DNA of 64,000 nt, from positions 10,674,581-10,738,580 of the forward strand of contig OZ037767.1 of the NCBI GenBank assembly GCA_964035545.1, in the 5' to 3' direction. The notes under the pieces are model-generated. The model worked only from the letters and a program-made list of their open reading frames with translations. It ran no database searches and was not told the DNA's origin. The stretch comes from Bugula neritina (taxonomy: Eukaryota > Animalia > Bryozoa). Every line of letters begins with the position of its first letter. Positions within the stretch are counted from its first letter, which is position 1. Below are positions 5,085 to 31,802 of the stretch, in pieces. A program made the translations under genes and the position numbers.

Positions 5085-6208
5085 ATAACCTTTAACTATA
5101 TGTATGGCCAGCTTAAAGTTATTAAGAAGTAGGAATACAAAAAAGTAAACCATTTTATTATAATATTAAAATGCAGGGGCTGTTTGAAAATTCTTTTCTG
5201 TTGCTCTTAACTGCTCTGAACTTTTAGTAGAATCACCCATTCATTAGCTAATATAGTGAAGAAACCCAAATCTTTTGTCAACTTTCTTCAATATTGAATA
5301 GTATCTGCCAGCTTCAACAACTTTCAACTTGAGCAATCATACACTACACTTTAAAAAAGTAATACTCAATTGCATGTCTTAACATATTCTTTAAATCGGA
5401 TAAAATAATTTTCTATATTCTTTATATCTCTATTTATATTTTAATGTTTTTAAAAGTTTTCATGCTAATGGCAGTCAAACTTACTACTTTTTAGAATAAT
5501 GCCACTTTTAAATGACTAGTTTTTTATCAGGAATCTTCAACTCATAAATATAACTTAGACAATTATTCACTAAATTACAACTGGCTTTGAAATGTACTGA
5601 AAAAAGTATCTTGAAAAAGCTGCTGTAATATTTTGTCAATATAACTTAAAGTTTGCTAAATTTATTAAGTTCCTTTTCTCAAATGGTATTAAAATTAATA
5701 AGACAAATTAATTAAAAATCAAAAACTGCAGTTGAATATTGGAGAAATTATTCAAGTTCAGATATATTATTGATATTCTCAAAGTTTTTATAATGAATGT
5801 TTATAGACTCCTTAAAAACTATTTTAGCTGACTGTATAGTCATTTAAATTAGCCATTCATTTGGTGATCATTTTTATTTAGTGATTCAGACTAAGTTGAA
5901 TGGCTAACTCTTTTTCTAGAAAATTACGTAGTTGTAGCAATTTTAAAAGATACATAACCTATGAAATACTTGACCAAATCTTAGATATAAAAGTTTAAGT
6001 AGCAAAGTAAAAGTATAGAAACCATCTCTGCACCAAATTGTTGCAGTAATGCAATAATTACTACACGCTAATATTAAAGTTTTGTTGATGTCAGAGTCTG
6101 TCAAATTTTGCTTAACAAGTCATGACTCAACTGATTTCAAATGCGCTGCAACACTACGACACATCTCTCTGGAACTATCGCTTGGAAAATATTACTTTTA
6201 CAAATAGA

Positions 6209-6394: not shown

Positions 6395-7416
6395 ATGGGA
6401 TACCTTGCTAGTGGGTTTGAATTGATTGCTATTTTTGATGAAGATCAACAAAATTCTTTCTATGGAACCAAAACTGATAAAGAAAGGTATGAATGTTAAA
6501 GTTTACATTTAATTATATTTTAGATACTTGATTTTGCTGCTAAGTTTCCTTCAACTCATTATATATATAAGCATACATTTCAATTCCGATTAGGAAACAG
6601 AATAATGTTTAGTAGCCTAAGTACACAGATTATATAATAGATTATATAACAGATAAAACAAATCCAATAGAATTCTTCAACTGTGTACATTAGCTATTAA
6701 CTATGACTATGTCACTACTTAGTTTCTGCTCAAACTCTACATTATAGTAATATAAAACAGCTCTTGGTATATTTATTTTCCATAAAAATTTGAAAAATAG
6801 TAACATAATAATAATATTAACAATGAAAATATCATAATTCTAATATTAATATTTAATGTTATTCATAATAATTTAATGGAAATTAAGTAAAATTCGTATA
6901 CTAAAATATTTTAACTAGGGAATTGTATAACTATATTTCAGGGCCAACTTTGAAAGAGAAGAGAATGCGGAACAGATGGCTGATTCAGCTGCCGATTACA
7001 AGGAGTCAGCTGACTGCCTGAGTTCAAATTTATCAGATGAACTCTTCATCAATCTAGATTTCACTCACCTTCTCAATGTAAGAGAAATTTTATTCTAATT
7101 TCTGTTAGCGCATGAATTTGGAAAATAATAATTACCATAGCTAATGTATTAACAGGTTTTTTGATTGTCTTTCTGCTAGCAAATGTAGCTATTATTTGCA
7201 AATTCCAATGACTAAAATAAACCATATCACAGGTATCTAGAGCTTATGTATGCAAGAGATACCAACATTGAATTATTTAGGTAGTTTCTGCAAATCTAAA
7301 ATGTTTATTGATAATGATTGCAGCAAGTTTGCATTTATACACAATCAATATTAAAAGTGTAAATTATATATAATATTTTTTCTCTATATGTTTTGTCCTG
7401 TTCCAATAGCCAGTGT

Positions 7417-7606: not shown

Positions 7607-10600
7607 AACCACCAGTTTCAGATGTTTATGAATTCACAGACCTCTAATCCTTAAACCTTCCGTAAATTTGCAGCTATAAATAGAAAATCTGAACTCTATT
7701 TACTAGAGTACATCAGCTTACTCATATTGTTTCTTATGTGCAAAACAATACTGATTCTAGTCATTATAATTAGTTAAAATATGTTTTCAATCCCATTCGT
7801 ATCATAGGTGAATTTTAGACATGGGTAGGTAAATGCAAAGTTCTACCTATCCATGTACATCTACCTCAGTTACTATACGTTGACTTTGTTTTACCTAAAC
7901 TCCATACATTGTATTATTCTATTTTATAAAATCTCATTGTTTCACTAATTAGCAATTTCAAATTTCTTTAAACAATACGATAGTATTATACATATTCATA
8001 AGCCTAGCAATATTATATTACTTAATGAGTAAATTGTATAAAACGATATTTATGCATCAACTGATTTTAACAATAGAAGTGTTATTTTGAAACAGTTTTT
8101 TCAAAATAAAACATGTCTAAATGTCAAAAATATGTTTCTTTGTTTATACACATTCATAATAGAATCGCAAAACTCGCAACTCTTCTATCTATTTCTTAAT
8201 ATATTACAGACAGCCTGTCGAACTATGCAATTATACTATGCTATGCTACAAAACACAATTTTTGATATAATATTTTAAAAACAGATCTTCTATTTTTAAA
8301 GAGTTTTCTAATTCATCGTTCTTTCAGTAGAGATCCAATAAAAAGTTGCATGCAAGCAATTATTCTATTTCTGCTATTTAAGCTAAATTGATAATAAGGT
8401 GTCAGCACTTGAAAGCATTATTAGTGGTTAAATAATACCTTTTGTCTGCAGAACATACGTAAATCTGAAGCTTTTTCACTATGCAAATTGTAAGCTTGTT
8501 CTCTGGAAGGCTGAAGATTTTTAATTTATATTTTCAGTTTGAACAAGCTGTAACATTTGCCTTTAAATGATAAAATCCGAGTCATGTTTTCATTATATAC
8601 ATGTAACTTTTTATAGTTTTTAAACCAATTATCCGGTTGGTTGTTTTAAATTTGTTCAATTAAACTTTTATTGTAAAATGGCAATTAATAGATGTTATAA
8701 TTAGGAAAAAGCTTGATTCACAAATTCTGCTCAAAGTGGACAACTATACAAAACTTTTGATAATAAATGCAGAATGTTTAAGATTAGACTAATTCTTTAG
8801 GTATGCAACAACCTTCCAAAAACAATTTTCAAGCTCTAGAATTAATAATCCATTTACCAGTATTTGTCAGACATTACATCACTTCATTTGTTATTATTAA
8901 TTTATACAAAGTACAAAGTATAATATCCCATAACCAAATCAGCACATTATGATGCACTATCAACACATTATACGTGTTCAGTTGAACTATTACAATGTTT
9001 ACTGACTCTCTTGCAATTTATTACGTGTTAAGCATCACAGCAATTGTATACGTGCCATAGCCAACAATTTGTTAGTTAATTATTGTTGCAACTTTGTGTT
9101 AGATGGTGAAGCTAAGCAAGCTAGTGGAGTGCTTAGCCCTTGAGACTGGTGCACCCTCATACCTTTCAAGTTTTGAGTGAAGAACTCCTTCTAACTTTGC
9201 AACATCTTTTTATCTCATGAGCTTTTACACTGAAGAATGATTATTTTGGTGTCAATATAAATCCTAGATTCATTACAGGTACTAATCATTTAATTATTAT
9301 CAAACAGAATTTTTTTTTAAGAAAAGGCAAAATTATATGCTTTATTTAATTGACAAAGCTTGAGAAGATCTTCAAATTATAAATAAATAATATTTGTATT
9401 ATTATTCCCATAGTGTAATTATAGTGTTGTTATCAGCGTTTCTATATTTGAACAGCAAATAAAAACTGCTTGCAGTGCTTATTTGCTTGCTTGCAGTGCT
9501 TACTTCTTAGCAGACAACAAAATTAGCCAACTTTTAACTCTAATACTAACAATTTTAGTGTATTAATTTCATGAAGATGCCGGTGAAAGCATAGAAATGC
9601 AACAAAAAGCATAAGCAAAATTTAAAAAATGATAGTTCAATTATTAGTATTGAGAGTTATCTTCTATTAAAAAGAGAGCTTACTTGTGATTTATAATGAC
9701 GACAGTTTTCAGTATCAACTCAACATTGATGTAACTTGTGAAACATCCACAGTAGTTAGGTGGTCAATGTTAACTTCTCTATATCTTTAAATTAGTAGTT
9801 GTCCTCTCCTAAAATGATTCATCCAAGTATTGCTAAAATTTCACTTTTAATAGCTGATAGCTTACTGAATTTTTTGCTTAAGCACATCACAAACATGTCA
9901 ATTTTACTTTTTTCTGTTATATATGATGCAAACTTTCTTAAAACAAAAAACACAAACTTATTTCATTTATTATGGAGCTTTTATGGTTTAGTCTAATATT
10001 AAAAGAACCTGAATTATAAACTTTTCAAGATATAATCAGACATAACACAACATAACCTGACAAGCAAAAATGTATTTGATAATTGCTCAAGATTACTTTG
10101 ATGGTCACAGTGAATGCAGAAATTAAAAGTTCAATAAATTCAATGTAATTTAAATTACCGTGGCACTTCTAATTTAAAACTTATAGTCAACTTGCATGAA
10201 AAAACAGCTATATTAAACTTATAAAACCCACAGAAGATGTTTGAACAAAATAATACTTTCATTTTAAGTATGCTGTACCGAATTGAGGTCCTCTGAAAAC
10301 GTTATAGGGGAATTATTTTTGGCACAATACTATTAGTATTAGTAACTTGACTCAGACCTATTACTACACAAATAATTGTAATCTCAAAGCGAATAAACGT
10401 ACTAAAAAGAGCACGAGTCACGGTATTATTCTTATTATAATTATGTACCTCAATAATATTATTATGCAGGTAAGAGAAATTAGTAGTTGTCTTCTTTCTT
10501 GAACAAGCAATCGTATAAATAAATTGCGGCGACGGTTTGAAAGTTCTGAAAACCGATTAATGCTTTGATTGCATCGAAAGGCGCCATTGATCGAATGACA

Positions 10601-10673: not shown

Positions 10674-16255
<5,582 letters not shown>

Positions 16256-17367: not shown

Positions 17368-20300
17368 TCATGGAGAAACACATTTACTATCTTTGTTGAA
17401 AGATAGGCAGGTCAGTTTTTCAGGTTTTGTCATACTTCTTATGGATCTTTCCAGGGTTTCTAAATAAAAACAATACATAATATGAAGTGCAGGACACCAT
17501 GTGAATGTCAACTTACTGCAGGTATAATTATACCACTACATTGTAAACATTGTCATTTTGTGTGAATCTTACAGTGTAGCCATTAGAGAATGAAGAAACG
17601 CCTTCGATGAAGACTATAGAAACACAAAAAATTTAATTTGGAAAAAGTATCCTAGTAAAAAGCATTAAGTTTGTTAGTTTCCATAAGAGAGCAGATAGCA
17701 ACTGTCTCAATAGAGGTTCACCGGTTGGGACAGCTTCATTCAATATAATTTCATACTGAAAAGAGAATAGTAGTAGTAGCATGCGCCCAAGGTGATATTA
17801 ACATGCTATGCCTATTGTGAGAACAGTAGGTGTCTGATTTAGCTTGGTTAGTTCCATACTTACCAATTGCATGCGCTTCATCTGAGAAGATACAATATCA
17901 ATCTTAACAAGAAAACTGAGTACTGATTAGCAGTTGTGTATGCATAGAATATATGTATGTATTAACCAAATATGGGGTGCAATGAGTTGAAATCTCCTCG
18001 TATTACAACACGCAATTTGCAAAATTCCAGTCACAATTCCAATTCAAAAAAATTCAAAAAGTGCATTACGGGGGATTGACAAATGTTAGTTATTATGGAA
18101 GACATTTTTAAAACTGCAAGCAATAGAGGAGCTGCACAATATAACAGTAGACCAAACAATTATAACAAAGAAAATACACAAAGCACAACCAATAGTACTA
18201 ACAATCATTTCCTACCTCTGCTGTTATGAGAAGATTCATTAAGAGTTGGTGAAGGAGAGAATGTCAGCCCATCGACAGCATCACCAGCGGCAGCGAGGTA
18301 CACACCTGGACTGGGTATTGGTGAACTTTGCAGACGCACCTTGACAATCTCAGTACATGTTTCTATGAATGCATCTATTAGTCTGGCCTGTAATACCAAA
18401 ATTGTAATACAAGTAGCTTCAAATATGAGGTGACTGAGTGAAATAGCTTGTGGTTGTCGAACTTGGAGTTGGGGGACTTAACTTTAAACTTGATAACCCA
18501 AACTACTGCACTCAGTCAACTCTAACTTGGAGCTGCTTATAGAACAATACGTAACATACCAGGTAATACAAAGTAGCACAAGAACCATGTGCTGCCCACA
18601 TGCAAACTGCGGTACGTGATTTAACATACCGACTTGGTGTAGACCCTTAGGACTTGACTGCTTATGCCCTTTTCCTGGTCGCTAGAACTCGCGGCAAACT
18701 GCAGGAGCAATGAGGGCAGGCTTTCCACCTTGTCTTTCCTGAAACTCTTTGGTTTCTGAGATTCACTACCACTTTCCTTGTCTATAACACGAAACAAACC
18801 CTGGTATATGATTGGCGCAGGCACGTACATGGGTCGAAGTTATCATAAAACAGCTGATTGGCTGAAAATTCCAACATGGCAGGTAACTTGCACACCTACC
18901 TTCGCCAGAAATGCACTCCCACGTTAAATCTTCATATTGTATCCCAAACACCGGCTCCTAAAACCAGCACACCAACACTACATGTGATGAATATAAAATT
19001 GACTCTTTGAGGTCAAGGCCGTGCATAAATAGGAAGTAGATAGAGAATGCATCACATATAAGCTTACTTGCTTCTCAGTGGATATCACGAAAATGCCATC
19101 TGTATTTGCACCAATGGAAACAGCCAGCCACGAACTGTGCAAGAAACTTTTGCTGCTTCGTTCAATAAAACCATCGAAAAATACAGACCTAAAGTGGCAG
19201 AAAAGTAAATTATTCAGGAATAATTGTAATAAGTTAAAGGTTTAAAATCGATTGGCGACATAGATAGTTGAATTGTTTGAAATAATCACTGTGTTTCCAT
19301 TGTTTCGAATGAATCTGTATGGATGCTCCTACGAATGACCTTGTGGTTGCAGTTGGCATTAACTTATGGCTGTGGTTACATTGATACAACTGCTTTCAAA
19401 CATCTAACAGAAAATACATTGCAAAGAATAATTCGAAGCAATGGAAATATAGCGATTAGCAGATATAAGCATATATTTGCTAGTTTGAGTGGAGACTACT
19501 TGCTACTAATTACTAAACAGTGGTTTAGGTAATATTCTAGTTTTAGTGAAACAAATGATATAAAAGCAGTGCATGGTCAGAATCAGCAGTACAAAATATG
19601 CACACAGCACACTAAATGGCCAGTTCCCAATTAGCCTCAAAACCTAAACAGCCTAAAACCATTAACCTGGGATATTTTGATAAAACTTGCAAAACCAAAG
19701 ATTTACAAGCTAAGAACTGATAAACTCCTATGGTTTTATTTCCATGCAGTTGTCCTAAACTGTGTTTTCCAGCTGATTGGAAAGCATAAGTTATAAAACT
19801 TTTTGGTTAAAGCAAAAGCCTCGAGTTGATTGGGAACTGGCCACAAATCCAACAATGGATTTGATGATTTAACTACAAGTGTGGTTACACAGATCAGAGA
19901 AATCAAGAAAATTATAGTAAGTTGAAGGTAGAAGTTATACATTAAACAGGTCAAGAAGGATAAAAGTCACACTGACCCATAAAATGGAAGTGATTCTGAA
20001 CACTCAGAAATATAAGTTAGTCTCAGATCTACTGCAGGAGGATTATTCAGCAGGCTGTGGGTTCTGGCAACATGTGATTGGCTAACAAGTGGAATTAGCG
20101 ATTTCAAATCATTCAAGTGCAACACAGGTAATAAGGCGGCTTGATTAGCTCTGAAAGATAGTAAAGTGTGCAGGTAAGCTAGGACAAAATGTCCGTAGAG
20201 AAATAGCTAACTGGAATATCAAAGTGAGTGTTGTTTGATAGAACAAATAGTTTTTATGTAGCTGCTGTATTGAATTTATGTATTTTTGAATAAATTTGAT

Positions 20301-23282
20301 CTCATAGAATATTGCTAATTTTGGCTGATTTATGTAGGTTGATAGTCTAGTATTGTGCATTGTGTTTTAGCTTTCAGTGTCAAATCAGTGATTATTTATT
20401 CACCAGATCATCAAAAGTTGTCATTATTACAATGCGACTGCCTGTAATTTGGGAGCTTCAGCTGTTTCAATTATGTACAGAAGATGGCAGACAAGATGGT
20501 GGACAAGATGGTAGACAAGATGATGGACAAGATGAGAAACAAGAGAGACAAGATTGCAGAAGAGATGGCAGACAAGATGGTAGACAAAATGGCAGAGAAG
20601 ATGGTGGACAAAATGATGGACAAGATGACACACCAGGTGATAGACACAGCTAAAAGTTTGTAACAACAGTTTTTAGTAGATCACCTCTACTGCCTTGCTA
20701 TGCATTTGCTAGGATGATTATACAGAAAAGTGAGAGAGCTTACAGTGAAGTTGCCAACAATCATGCTCTCCACTCTATAGGCCACTTTATAGACCGAGGC
20801 CCATAGAATGAGCTGAGTTTGATAGTGCTGCAAAGTCCTTTAGATAGAAATATATGTACAATTTAATTCTAACTCAATAACCATTATAACATTATTAAAA
20901 GTTAATATAAGTGTGTCAGCTTATGAATCAAAATTTATAACATATCCGAGTATATTTTACAGTAAAATTTGTTGCTTTTGTATCTATAACATTCTTGGAC
21001 ATTCTGTTTCATATATACACTGTGCGGGAGAGCTAACAAACTCTTCAAAACTGAGTTCACACATATCTTAGATGTTGTAGTATGTGAACGCACATGTTTC
21101 CAGTGTAACCACAGCTTTATTGATATGAAGGGAAGAGTGAGGTAAGCAAATCATTACAACATTCATACAGAGTCACTCCCAAACCAAACTTATACCAAAA
21201 GCATATCAGCGACTGAGAAGCCTAGCAATTTGCGAACAGCTGATGAGGTGAAATAAGCTGAATCAATGGCTGTCAAACTTCACCAAACATTACCCATAAT
21301 ATGGCAGTATATGTACGCCGTCGAGGTATGCTTTGTACCACTTCTCAACTCTTTCATGGTCTGCATTTGCAGATTGTTCGACGGGGTCAAAAGATTTGTG
21401 AGTGAAACAGAATAGCTTACAAACTTCATCATGTAACTTAGAGTTTGACTGAATGGACAAAGGAAACAATGAATGCAGGGACCTGTAAAATGTGGAAACA
21501 TTACACTAGTAATAAGCACATTAATAAGTAGCTCAACAAAAAAACCAACTGAAGTATTCTCTCCAAAAGAGATGACAACTGCTACTTTCCTTGTCATTTC
21601 TACCCCCCTCGACAATTTTATCATTGAGTTTTTCAATAACACTCACATCACTTTGATAGAATATTGAGCGAGAAAAAATCCTGTATAGTTAACCAATAAA
21701 ATTGTAAGAGAAAATATATGCCATAGCATCACATAAGCATATATAACTATGCATAGTACTTCATTATGCCCATGTAGCCACACAATAATAAATGCATGGT
21801 GGAATAATCAACCGAATACTGATAATATTATAATTAAAACGTTTCCTTAACAGTTTCCGTTAGTCCTATGCTGTGAACTCTAAATGCTGCATCGATTCAT
21901 GTCTGCAATGTTATGCCAAGTAAAATATACTTTATTCTTTTAAATAGACCGTAAAGAACCCTGTTATGAAATGCATTGCTATTTTGAAATAAGTTTTATG
22001 GGTTTTAGCTGATGAAAATACATCATATAAAAGATTATCGTAAGTTTGATAAGCCAAGGGAAAAGACTCTGGCCTTACTTGTAGTAGTCTGGGGTGTGCT
22101 CCAGTTCATTATACGGCCCATACTGCATGACACAAAGAACTCCGGCTAATTTCACGGCTAGCTCCCTATCACAAGGATATGTACCATTCATAATGTTGGA
22201 CCGAGCTTCCGTGAACAGCAACTCCAATATTTCCGTATCTGTCACCTGTGAGAACATAATAGCGCATACCTAAGATGAACCAAACACTTGCAGCATTGCA
22301 AGATGTTAAATGATCACAAGTTTACTATCAGTTTGACACTTTTTTAAAACACTGAAATTAAAATCTATTAGGCGTATAGCTGTTCACTAATTTGCCTCAA
22401 ACCTACATTATAAACTAATCCTAACAAAAACTATTATCACTTAATTTTTCTTATGAAACTCAACGTACTTTGAGATCCTCTTCCCGTGAAATGTATACAT
22501 TGCGTCGGAGGTGAACATAAGGTTGCTGTGTCTGTATCAGTTTCTCACTAACCGTTGTGTACTTTCGGAGGTACACTGGCCATTTACCGAACAGTTGAAC
22601 AGGACAATGATTGGGTTTCAATTGCAGCTCTACAGAAATTATTGCCCAATTATAGGTTTAACCATAGATTAAACGAAACTCAGAAACATAGAAAGTATCT
22701 TGAATAAAAAATCTTAATTTCTACCCAAATCAGAAGACACAAGCCATAGACTGAGAACGTGTCTTGCCTCCCTGGCATTGAGCTCTAACATCTCGATAAC
22801 ACTATCCATAATCTCAGTGGCTTGTGTGCGCTGGTCAATTGTGAGGGTTACATGTGTCAGGTCTGGCAGACATATGTGCAGTTCAAGCTCTAAATAATAT
22901 ACAAACACGTATAAAATACTGACAGTCAATGGTAATAAGGTAACAAAAACACTGTAATAAGGTTCTGCATTCTACATTCTGCATTCTACATTATAACAGT
23001 AATGGCAATAAATTTGCAGAGCTATGAATAAGTCAAGAAGCACTCAATTGAGTTTAACATGAATGCTAAGGGGACTGAAACTTAACATTCAAAAACTAAT
23101 TGCAAATTTTCATAAAATTTTTACAAAGAATTCTGAGTTTATAATAATCAAAGTGTATTATTCGAGTGTTTGAAGAATGATTTACCACTGTGGCGCTGTG
23201 CTGTTCTAGACACCTGTCTTGAGGGTAATGGTGCAACGCCAGCATTGACTTCAGTCAACTCAACTTCCTCGCTTTTGCTCAT
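17368..23282 (-). CDS. FRMD8: FERM domain-containing protein 8 (iTAP/Bili)-like; core exons 23282-23186, 22889-22725, 22629-22469, 22245-22079, [21482-21294 or 20150-19977], about 19188-19068, 18957-18900, 18781-18630, from about 18387, small tail exons, 17459-17368
   Basis: Spliced LSLWLVSSDLELQLKPNHCPVQLFGKWP...PYVHLRRNVYISREEDLKVTDTEILELLFTEARSNIMNGTYPCD...LP(Y/F)YGSVFFDG...GIQYEDLTWE matches FRMD8-family motifs. Tail splicing is ambiguous. Confidence 0.88.
20481..20645. repeat. 12-bp degenerate tandem repeat
   Basis: GACAAGATGGTG-like units lying between the two FRMD8 paralogous exons. Confidence 0.9.
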
Positions 23283-23699
23283 ATTTTAATGTTAATATAA
23301 GAACTCTACATGAAAATAGAAAGCAATGAAGATATGATAATTAATTGTTGACTAAATAATGACTTAAGTTTAGTTATAATTATAATATTAATAACGGAGC
23401 AATAATCAGTTTTCAACAAACTTACAAAGCCAATTGGCAATTGTTGCTTGTATGAAATTTAATCTTAATTATAATTATTATTGATAATCATAATCATAAT
23501 CATAATGATAATCATAGTGTAAATAATAAATTGTTATTTGGGAAATGTAAATAAAATATAAGTTATTAAGTATAACTATAAATATGGTATATTATAAACA
23601 TGAAATAACAATATTTAATTCAAACAATAATTTACTAAATTTAGTGACAAATAAGTATTTAATTGTCATAATTTAAATTATCCATATTCATATTCAATT

Positions 23700-26416: not shown

Positions 26417-31802
<5,386 letters not shown>

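Follow-up and report, generated by a model that had tools for sequence, protein, structure and literature searches.

The predicted FRMD8 gene of the bryozoan Bugula neritina very probably carries an old tandem duplication of one exon, whose two copies, here called exons A and B, are mutually exclusive in splicing and encode alternative C-terminal halves of the F2 lobe of the FERM domain. The gene lies on the minus strand of a stretch of 64,000 nucleotides (nt) of contig OZ037767.1 (assembly GCA_964035545.1, positions 10,674,581 to 10,738,580), referred to below as the window, and positions are counted from its first letter unless another contig is named. FRMD8, also called iTAP, is a little-studied adaptor; the mammalian protein binds the cytoplasmic N-terminus of iRhom and keeps the iRhom/ADAM17 sheddase stable at the cell surface (PMC6042961). 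A preliminary description of the window, made by reading the sequence alone, had proposed that the two exons are paralogous and probably exclusive, and the coordinates, phases, peptides and splice sites that it gave for them all proved correct on rereading.

Exons A and B and their use in RNA

Exon 4, which is constitutive and encodes VTDTEILELLFTEARSNIMNGTYPCDRELAVKLAGVLCVMQYGPYNELEHTPDYY, ends in ...PDYY plus the two bases AA (phase 2) at 22079 and is followed by GTAAGG. Between it and the next constitutive exon, which opens at 19188 with (G)SVFFDG, lie two further exons. Exon A has the acceptor ttttacAG and the donor GG/GTAATG (the slash marks the exon end) and encodes (K)SLHSLFPLSIQ...WYKAYLDGVHILPYY(G); exon B has the acceptor tctttcAG and the donor GG/GTCAGT and encodes (K)ANQAALLPVLH...LRLTYISECSESLPFY(G). 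Both are open in the frame set by exon 4, both are phase 2-2 with lengths that are multiples of 3, and both start with L(F/L)P, finish with LP(Y/F)YG and pass the same phase on to the exon at 19188. They lie 1143 nt apart and show the adjacency, equal phase and similar length by which mutually exclusive exons are recognized.

The use of these exons in RNA was read from Logan contigs of four RNA-like runs (X1, X3, X4 and X6), which belong to four studies under the same organism label and were placed on window positions 17600 to 23400; joint positions were read after applying the cut offsets stated with the joints. The RNA contig joints coincide to the base with all predicted boundaries of A and B, and every one is GT-AG. 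Each of the two exons is spliced directly to both constitutive neighbors (Table 1). All four single-exon joints among the junctions that the preliminary description had singled out for checking were found, and a joint from A to B (21294>20150) is absent from the contig joints of the four runs, contigs being prone to drop rare forms. No joint that skips both exons (22079>19188) is present among them either. Furthermore, exon B forms a contig of its own (177 nt) in three runs and the exon 4 contig stops at 22079 in all four, the behavior of an assembly graph at a branch point. The findings that would have spoken against a switch, namely constant co-inclusion or one exon left unspliced and decayed, are not what was observed: both exons are spliced singly and both are open in relatives. 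As spliced, conserved open exons, A and B stand far beyond chance.

The same choice is annotated in another bryozoan, Watersipora subatra. Its RefSeq isoforms X1, X2 and X3 (486, 475 and 419 amino acids [aa]) are identical outside residues 200 to 266, where an A-like segment (67 aa) stands in isoform X1 and a B-like one (56 aa) in X2, both being absent from X3. RefSeq holds no W. subatra isoform with both segments. The contig junction pattern and isoforms X1 and X2 thus agree with the either-or use first proposed from the sequence.

Compared with the window, the RNA contigs of the four runs and three metagenome contigs (L003 to L005) differ by 2 to 6% in exons and by about 9% in one intron, so the RNA filed under this organism label comes from a diverged lineage; differences of this size point to a cryptic sister lineage rather than to one strain.

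One contig also points to a minor exon within the A-B intron, whose donor CT/GTAAGC at 20744 is spliced to the exon B acceptor. A third coding variant was rejected here, as the frame that it would need runs into a stop 6 codons ahead of the donor, and the exon is therefore possibly a poison exon or splicing noise.

Orthology, age and divergence of the exon pair

Sequence searches were run with individual exons or with database proteins. Exon 4 matches the Pfam family FERM_M (F2 lobe, PF00373) at an E value of 6e-8, over the cut-off, and an exhaustive HMMER search with this exon led to P0003, a protein of 475 aa with 70% identity over that exon. P0003 and its sisters are the W. subatra proteins called 'putative FERM domain-containing protein FRMD8P1' (isoforms X1 and X2) and 'FERM domain-containing protein 8-like' (isoform X3). 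In a word search, P0003 next matched FRMD8 proteins from reptiles, fish, a hemichordate and a spider (E values of 1e-41 to 1e-26), with KRIT1 only afterwards, and NCBI and UniRef clusters give FRMD8 names to relatives from a crinoid, hagfish, lamprey, coral, insects and an annelid. In precomputed Pfam annotation, the full-length relatives, including the Watersipora orthologue, carry PF00373 together with PF24522, the KRIT1/FRMD8-type F3 lobe; window exon 6 alone, with only 40 aa, gives no Pfam match. Exon A or B alone as a query returned nothing meaningful in Pfam or Protein Data Bank (PDB) sequence searches, and a PDB sequence search with exon 4 returned no FRMD8 chain, with talin and KRIT1 at the top. 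To judge from the names and the domain layout of its orthologues, the window gene is an FRMD8 orthologue, in agreement with the initial assignment.

Vertebrate FRMD8 belongs to the same family, has the same layout of PF00373 and PF24522, and is about 28 to 30% identical to the bryozoan protein; it differs in having a single ...LP...YL..C..LPYYG segment, and it is a partner of iRhom1/2 in the ADAM17 sheddase complex. A six-frame search of the genome (216 Mb, 321 contigs) with the iRhom N-terminal family PF12595 gave no match, a result that is uninformative since control genomes were equally silent.

The exon pair recurs in other bryozoan sequences. In the W. subatra genome (contig L002) the order is exon 4 (6404-6574), A (7757-7958), B (8768-8936) and exon 6 (from 10059). 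The gene thus shares with the window its exon order, phase, neighboring SRF gene and isoforms that differ in the A/B segment; it differs in its annotated neither-exon isoform, a form without counterpart among the RNA contigs placed on the window. A Logan contig (L006), found through a word-based protein search with the A alignment (one match), has an exon 4 that is 80% identical to that of the window and carries an A-like exon (1618-1818) and a B-like exon (2318-2491) in the same order; the same kind of search with the B alignment gave no match. Metagenome contig L001 has an A-like exon (5412-5622) and then ends, and L003 to L005, which represent a sibling lineage of the window, have both exons. 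Identity to window exon A is 47 to 51% and 95% among the A-like exons of L001, L002, L003 and L006, and B-like exons are present in L002, L003 and L006. The A exon keeps an open frame and intact splice sites across five lineages, with 20 invariant residues. An A-exon profile detects every A exon at E values below 1e-35 and B exons at 0.002 or worse, and a profile of the window and Watersipora B exons detects the B exon of L006 at 1.7e-11 and A exons at 0.09 or worse. Each profile recovers its own set; A and B thus form two sets of orthologues, and their duplication is older than the split of these lineages.

Are the two exons related to each other? Inside the window, A and B give no BLASTP alignment. 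In W. subatra the two align by BLASTP at an E value of 7e-6 with 32% identity, and cross matches link Watersipora B with window A (0.002) and with the A exon of L006 (0.005). Comparison of a five-sequence A profile with a three-sequence B profile by hhalign gave an E value of 9.4e-6 and a probability of 83% over 54 columns, end to end; an earlier profile comparison with few sequences had aligned only the last 13 columns, and the added relatives resolved the homology. The two exons are, on these alignments, distant paralogues, as had been supposed, with significance reached only when relatives are included.

Both correspond to the ...LP...YL..C..LPYYG segment, which occurs once in every other aligned FRMD8; across the 16-sequence alignment neither the P of LP nor the P.YG motif varies, and each occurs once. 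The age of the duplication was examined with a profile of the F2 C-terminal segment from 15 nonbryozoan FRMD8 proteins. A single matching exon was found in the annelid Owenia (E value of 5e-19), the hemichordate Ptychodera (1e-20) and the crinoid Anneissia (7e-22), and the profile revealed no second copy in these three genomes. Together with the 16-sequence alignment, this bears out the view that a single such segment is the norm. The same profile detects bryozoan A exons at 1e-5 to 3e-4 (0.25 in L006) and B exons at 0.007 to 0.03. With one copy in annelid, hemichordate and crinoid, the pair looks bryozoan-specific; molluscs, brachiopods, phoronids and noncheilostome bryozoans lay outside the comparison.

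Two candidates for a similar arrangement in these outgroups were discarded. An extra weak match in Anneissia has no splice donor and was rejected as noise, and the only difference among the Owenia isoforms is an N-terminal cassette. A separate observation concerns FRMD8 of Anneissia japonica (contig L008, 14561-14998), where NIEVIFIYLFCFSLSIENLLP... occurs twice: a near-copy of the acceptor region and the first dozen codons precedes the single F2 C-terminal exon in the same open frame. This repeat is a partial tandem duplication and could provide an alternative 3' splice site.

The swapped segment has diverged more than its surroundings. Between the window and W. subatra, protein identity is 67 to 77% in constitutive exons, 47% in A and 37% in B. 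The constitutive exons differ from the sibling lineage (L003) with a synonymous divergence (pS) of 0.19 (range, 0.13 to 0.25) and a nonsynonymous divergence (pN) of 0.022. At this short distance A and B keep about 98% nucleotide identity, versus 90.6% for the intron that separates them, whose alignment has 49 gap positions, and exon B has 3 synonymous and no nonsynonymous changes. The pS of A (0.03) and B (0.07) lies below that of the constitutive exons, with very small counts; low synonymous divergence is expected if splicing signals lie inside alternative exons, and the values fit such signals. On the Watersipora comparison, the swapped module evolves faster than the rest of the protein while staying open with intact splice sites.

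Predicted isoforms and the case for a switch

Do both versions make a complete lobe? The two isoforms were modeled with AlphaFold2, as the preliminary description had suggested, using Watersipora isoforms X1 and X2 with a 16-sequence alignment each. The predicted local distance difference test score is 79 for X1 and 78.6 for X2. The swapped segment has the same helix order in both, with helices at 207-211, 213-235 and 244-259 in X1 and at 202-205, 208-211, 214-230 and 239-250 in X2, and the first F3 strand follows it directly; the B version has shorter helices and a shorter loop. For both models the best match is the FERM domain of KRIT1 (PDB 4hdq, 8t09 and 3u7d), with a Foldseek E value of about 1e-20 and a target-normalized TM-score of 0.85. 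KRIT1 is the closest solved fold and shares the Pfam family KRIT1_FRMD8_FERM_C, but identity is about 21%, and KRIT1 is an ankyrin-repeat protein that binds Rap1 and HEG1. The two models share a fold, so either exon is predicted to complete the same FERM lobe.

We propose that an ancient tandem duplication of one FRMD8 exon gave rise to A and B. Splicing would join exon 4 at 22079 to either A or B and then to the exon at 19188, and the two messages would yield proteins that are alike except for the C-terminal half of the F2 lobe, a linker and three helices. The A and B versions may in turn alter a binding or regulatory surface of FRMD8, or its stability.

Tandem mutually exclusive exons are known from insect Dscam1, myosin heavy chain and 14-3-3 zeta. 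In the window pair, as in these, homologous exons lie next to each other, match in phase, are of similar length and are used one per message, with a structural module swapped; it differs in having two variants only and in that the choice is imposed neither by the frame nor by the length of the intron. The pair is an ordinary exon duplication with alternative splicing of a well-known kind, in a lineage-restricted example.

What could enforce exclusivity? Since both exon lengths are multiples of 3, the reading frame does not. The A-B intron measures 1143 nt in the window, about 810 nt in Watersipora and about 500 nt in L006, so a short intron does not explain it either. Docking/selector pairing of the type used by some insect clusters, which the preliminary description had suggested looking for, was not found in the FRMD8 introns. 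Comparison of the window with three relatives gave no conserved blocks outside exons; inverted repeats had a chance-like density; and 40, 64 and 29 of 100 shuffles in three species equaled the best ungapped pairing of the first intron with the second. These tests are crude, and gapped or structure-only conservation could escape them. Global duplex energy of the introns was uninformative, the measure being unrealistic for long introns. An Rbfox-type UGCAUG occurs once 229 nt downstream of B, in the window as in its sibling lineage, at a position that is not kept in Watersipora, L006 or L001.

That the conservation, pairing and UGCAUG tests found no mechanism of exclusivity weighs against a strict switch, and so do several other points. 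The reading frame leaves the choice free, and Watersipora has its neither-exon isoform X3. Contigs lose rare variants and cannot count molecules, their depths are rough, and low-level co-inclusion of A and B is compatible with them. Each A junction comes from one run only, with a shorter side of 22 to 28 nt, and the interior of exon A is uncovered by contigs, although such a gap proves nothing. Against the sibling lineage, exon A has 3 nonsynonymous changes and 1 synonymous change, which are tiny counts. As for function, a 2024 paper (PMC10896983) still places the FRMD8-iRhom interaction site only approximately.

Several of these points would suit A and B as independently regulated cassette exons, for which A, B, both or neither are possible and the either-or pattern merely mirrors whichever forms are most abundant: each of the four combinations preserves the frame, the one without either exon is annotated in Watersipora, no docking/selector pairing, short intron or frame constraint was found, and contigs cannot prove rare forms absent. 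Such an arrangement nonetheless seems unlikely, since neither the A-B nor the exon 4-exon 6 junction occurs in the four runs while all four single-exon junctions do, RefSeq lacks the double isoform in Watersipora, and inclusion of both exons would give a compact lobe a second set of the three helices that every aligned FRMD8 has once. It is very improbable that only B matters in this species and that A is a relic spliced at a low, nonfunctional level, for although B junctions occur in all four runs and the substitutions against the sibling lineage favor B, exon A retains its frame, splice sites and invariant residues across five lineages with 47 to 51% identity in the deeper comparisons, reaches contig depths of the same order as B (71 versus 190 in run X3 and 40 versus 37 in run X6), is annotated as an isoform in Watersipora and, in most lineages, is closer than B to the canonical FRMD8 segment of other animals.

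If A and B are exclusive exons, as we favor, what would the switch be for? The strongly diverged B exon, present in all four RNA runs, might retarget FRMD8, with one isoform keeping the ancestral binding to the iRhom tail and the other binding a different membrane client or none; we hold this to be unlikely. If true, bryozoans would tune ADAM17-type shedding, or a new pathway, by splice choice within the F2 lobe. The surface by which FRMD8 holds iRhom, and hence the ADAM17 sheddase, has been mapped only approximately, and two very different F2 halves long kept by selection would mark this half as functionally sensitive and supply ready-made variants for FRMD8 binding studies.

The preliminary description had also regarded the switch as undescribed for FRMD8. 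We found no paper on exclusive exons in bryozoans or on this FRMD8 switch, and the human FRMD8 splicing event in the literature is an exon skip rather than an exclusive pair, but RefSeq does annotate the switch in W. subatra. As far as we have seen, it is visible in public annotation and undescribed in papers.

Gene model and neighboring features

The RNA contig joints and one matched loose contig end yield a coherent ten-exon model of FRMD8 (Table 1). Summed exon lengths predict a protein of 457 codons with exon A and 452 with exon B. Exon 2 has a weak Pfam match to the F1 lobe of FERM, and the last coding exon is additionally supported by a tblastn match to the C-terminus of the W. subatra protein.

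Table 1. Exons, splice junctions and other features of the FRMD8 region, in window coordinates (X1, X3, X4 and X6 denote RNA-like runs)
Feature	Position	Strand	Support or remarks
Exon 1 (5' untranslated region and ATG 23282-23280)	23186-23307	-	RNA contigs extend to 23307; splice 23186>22889
Exon 2 (FERM F1 lobe)	22725-22889	-	Joints 23186>22889, 22725>22629; 72% identity to W. subatra protein
Exon 3 (F1/F2 linker region, LQLKPNHCP...)	22469-22629	-	Joint 22243>22467 (cut +2); 77% identity to W. subatra
Exon 4, constitutive (first half of FERM F2 lobe)	22079-22245	-	FERM_M, E 6e-8
Alternative exon A (F2 second half, version A; 189 nt, 63 codons)	21294-21482	-	Joints 22079>21482 (X6), 21294>19188 (X3)
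Alternative exon B (F2 second half, version B; 174 nt, 58 codons)	19977-20150	-	Joints 22079>20150 (4 runs), 19977>19188 (3 runs)
Exon 6, constitutive (F3 lobe start, (G)SVFFDGFIE...)	19068-19188	-	Joints from A and from B; 67% identity to W. subatra
Exon 7	18900-18957	-	Joints 19067>18956 (cut +1), 18900>18781
Exon 8	18630-18781	-	Joint 18629>18386 (cut +1)
Exon 9	18216-18387	-	X6 contig spans 18216-18386 and continues into sequence matching 17432-17459
Last coding exon (stop TGA 17370-17368)	17368-17459	-	X6 loose end matches 17432-17459 with 2 substitutions; acceptor tttatttAG
Junction exon 4 to B, A skipped	22079>20150		X1, X3, X4, X6; contig depths 65, 160, 44, 37
Junction B to exon 6	19977>19188		X3, X4, X6; contig depths 190, 65, 128
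Junction A to exon 6, B skipped	21294>19188		X3; contig depth 71
Junction exon 4 to A	22079>21482		X6; contig depth 40
Minor cryptic exon 3' end in A-B intron	20744-20773	-	One 60-nt contig, depth 12, X4 only
12-nt minisatellite in A-B intron, 12.5 copies	20481-20627		Tandem Repeats Finder
SRF-type MADS-box gene, tail-to-tail with FRMD8	11159-16055	+	Also in W. subatra (L002, 13382-15281)

The SRF-type gene beside FRMD8 in both the window and W. subatra is a case of conserved microsynteny. On the other side of FRMD8, the plus strand holds a gene within 27900-30400 that encodes a WW domain (29450-29662; Pfam E value of 1.6e-10) and whose sequence is suggestive of Salvador/SAV1, a Hippo pathway protein. 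Long (TA)n/(ATAT)n microsatellites occupy 12271-12475 and 26769-27104, in intergenic or intronic sequence.

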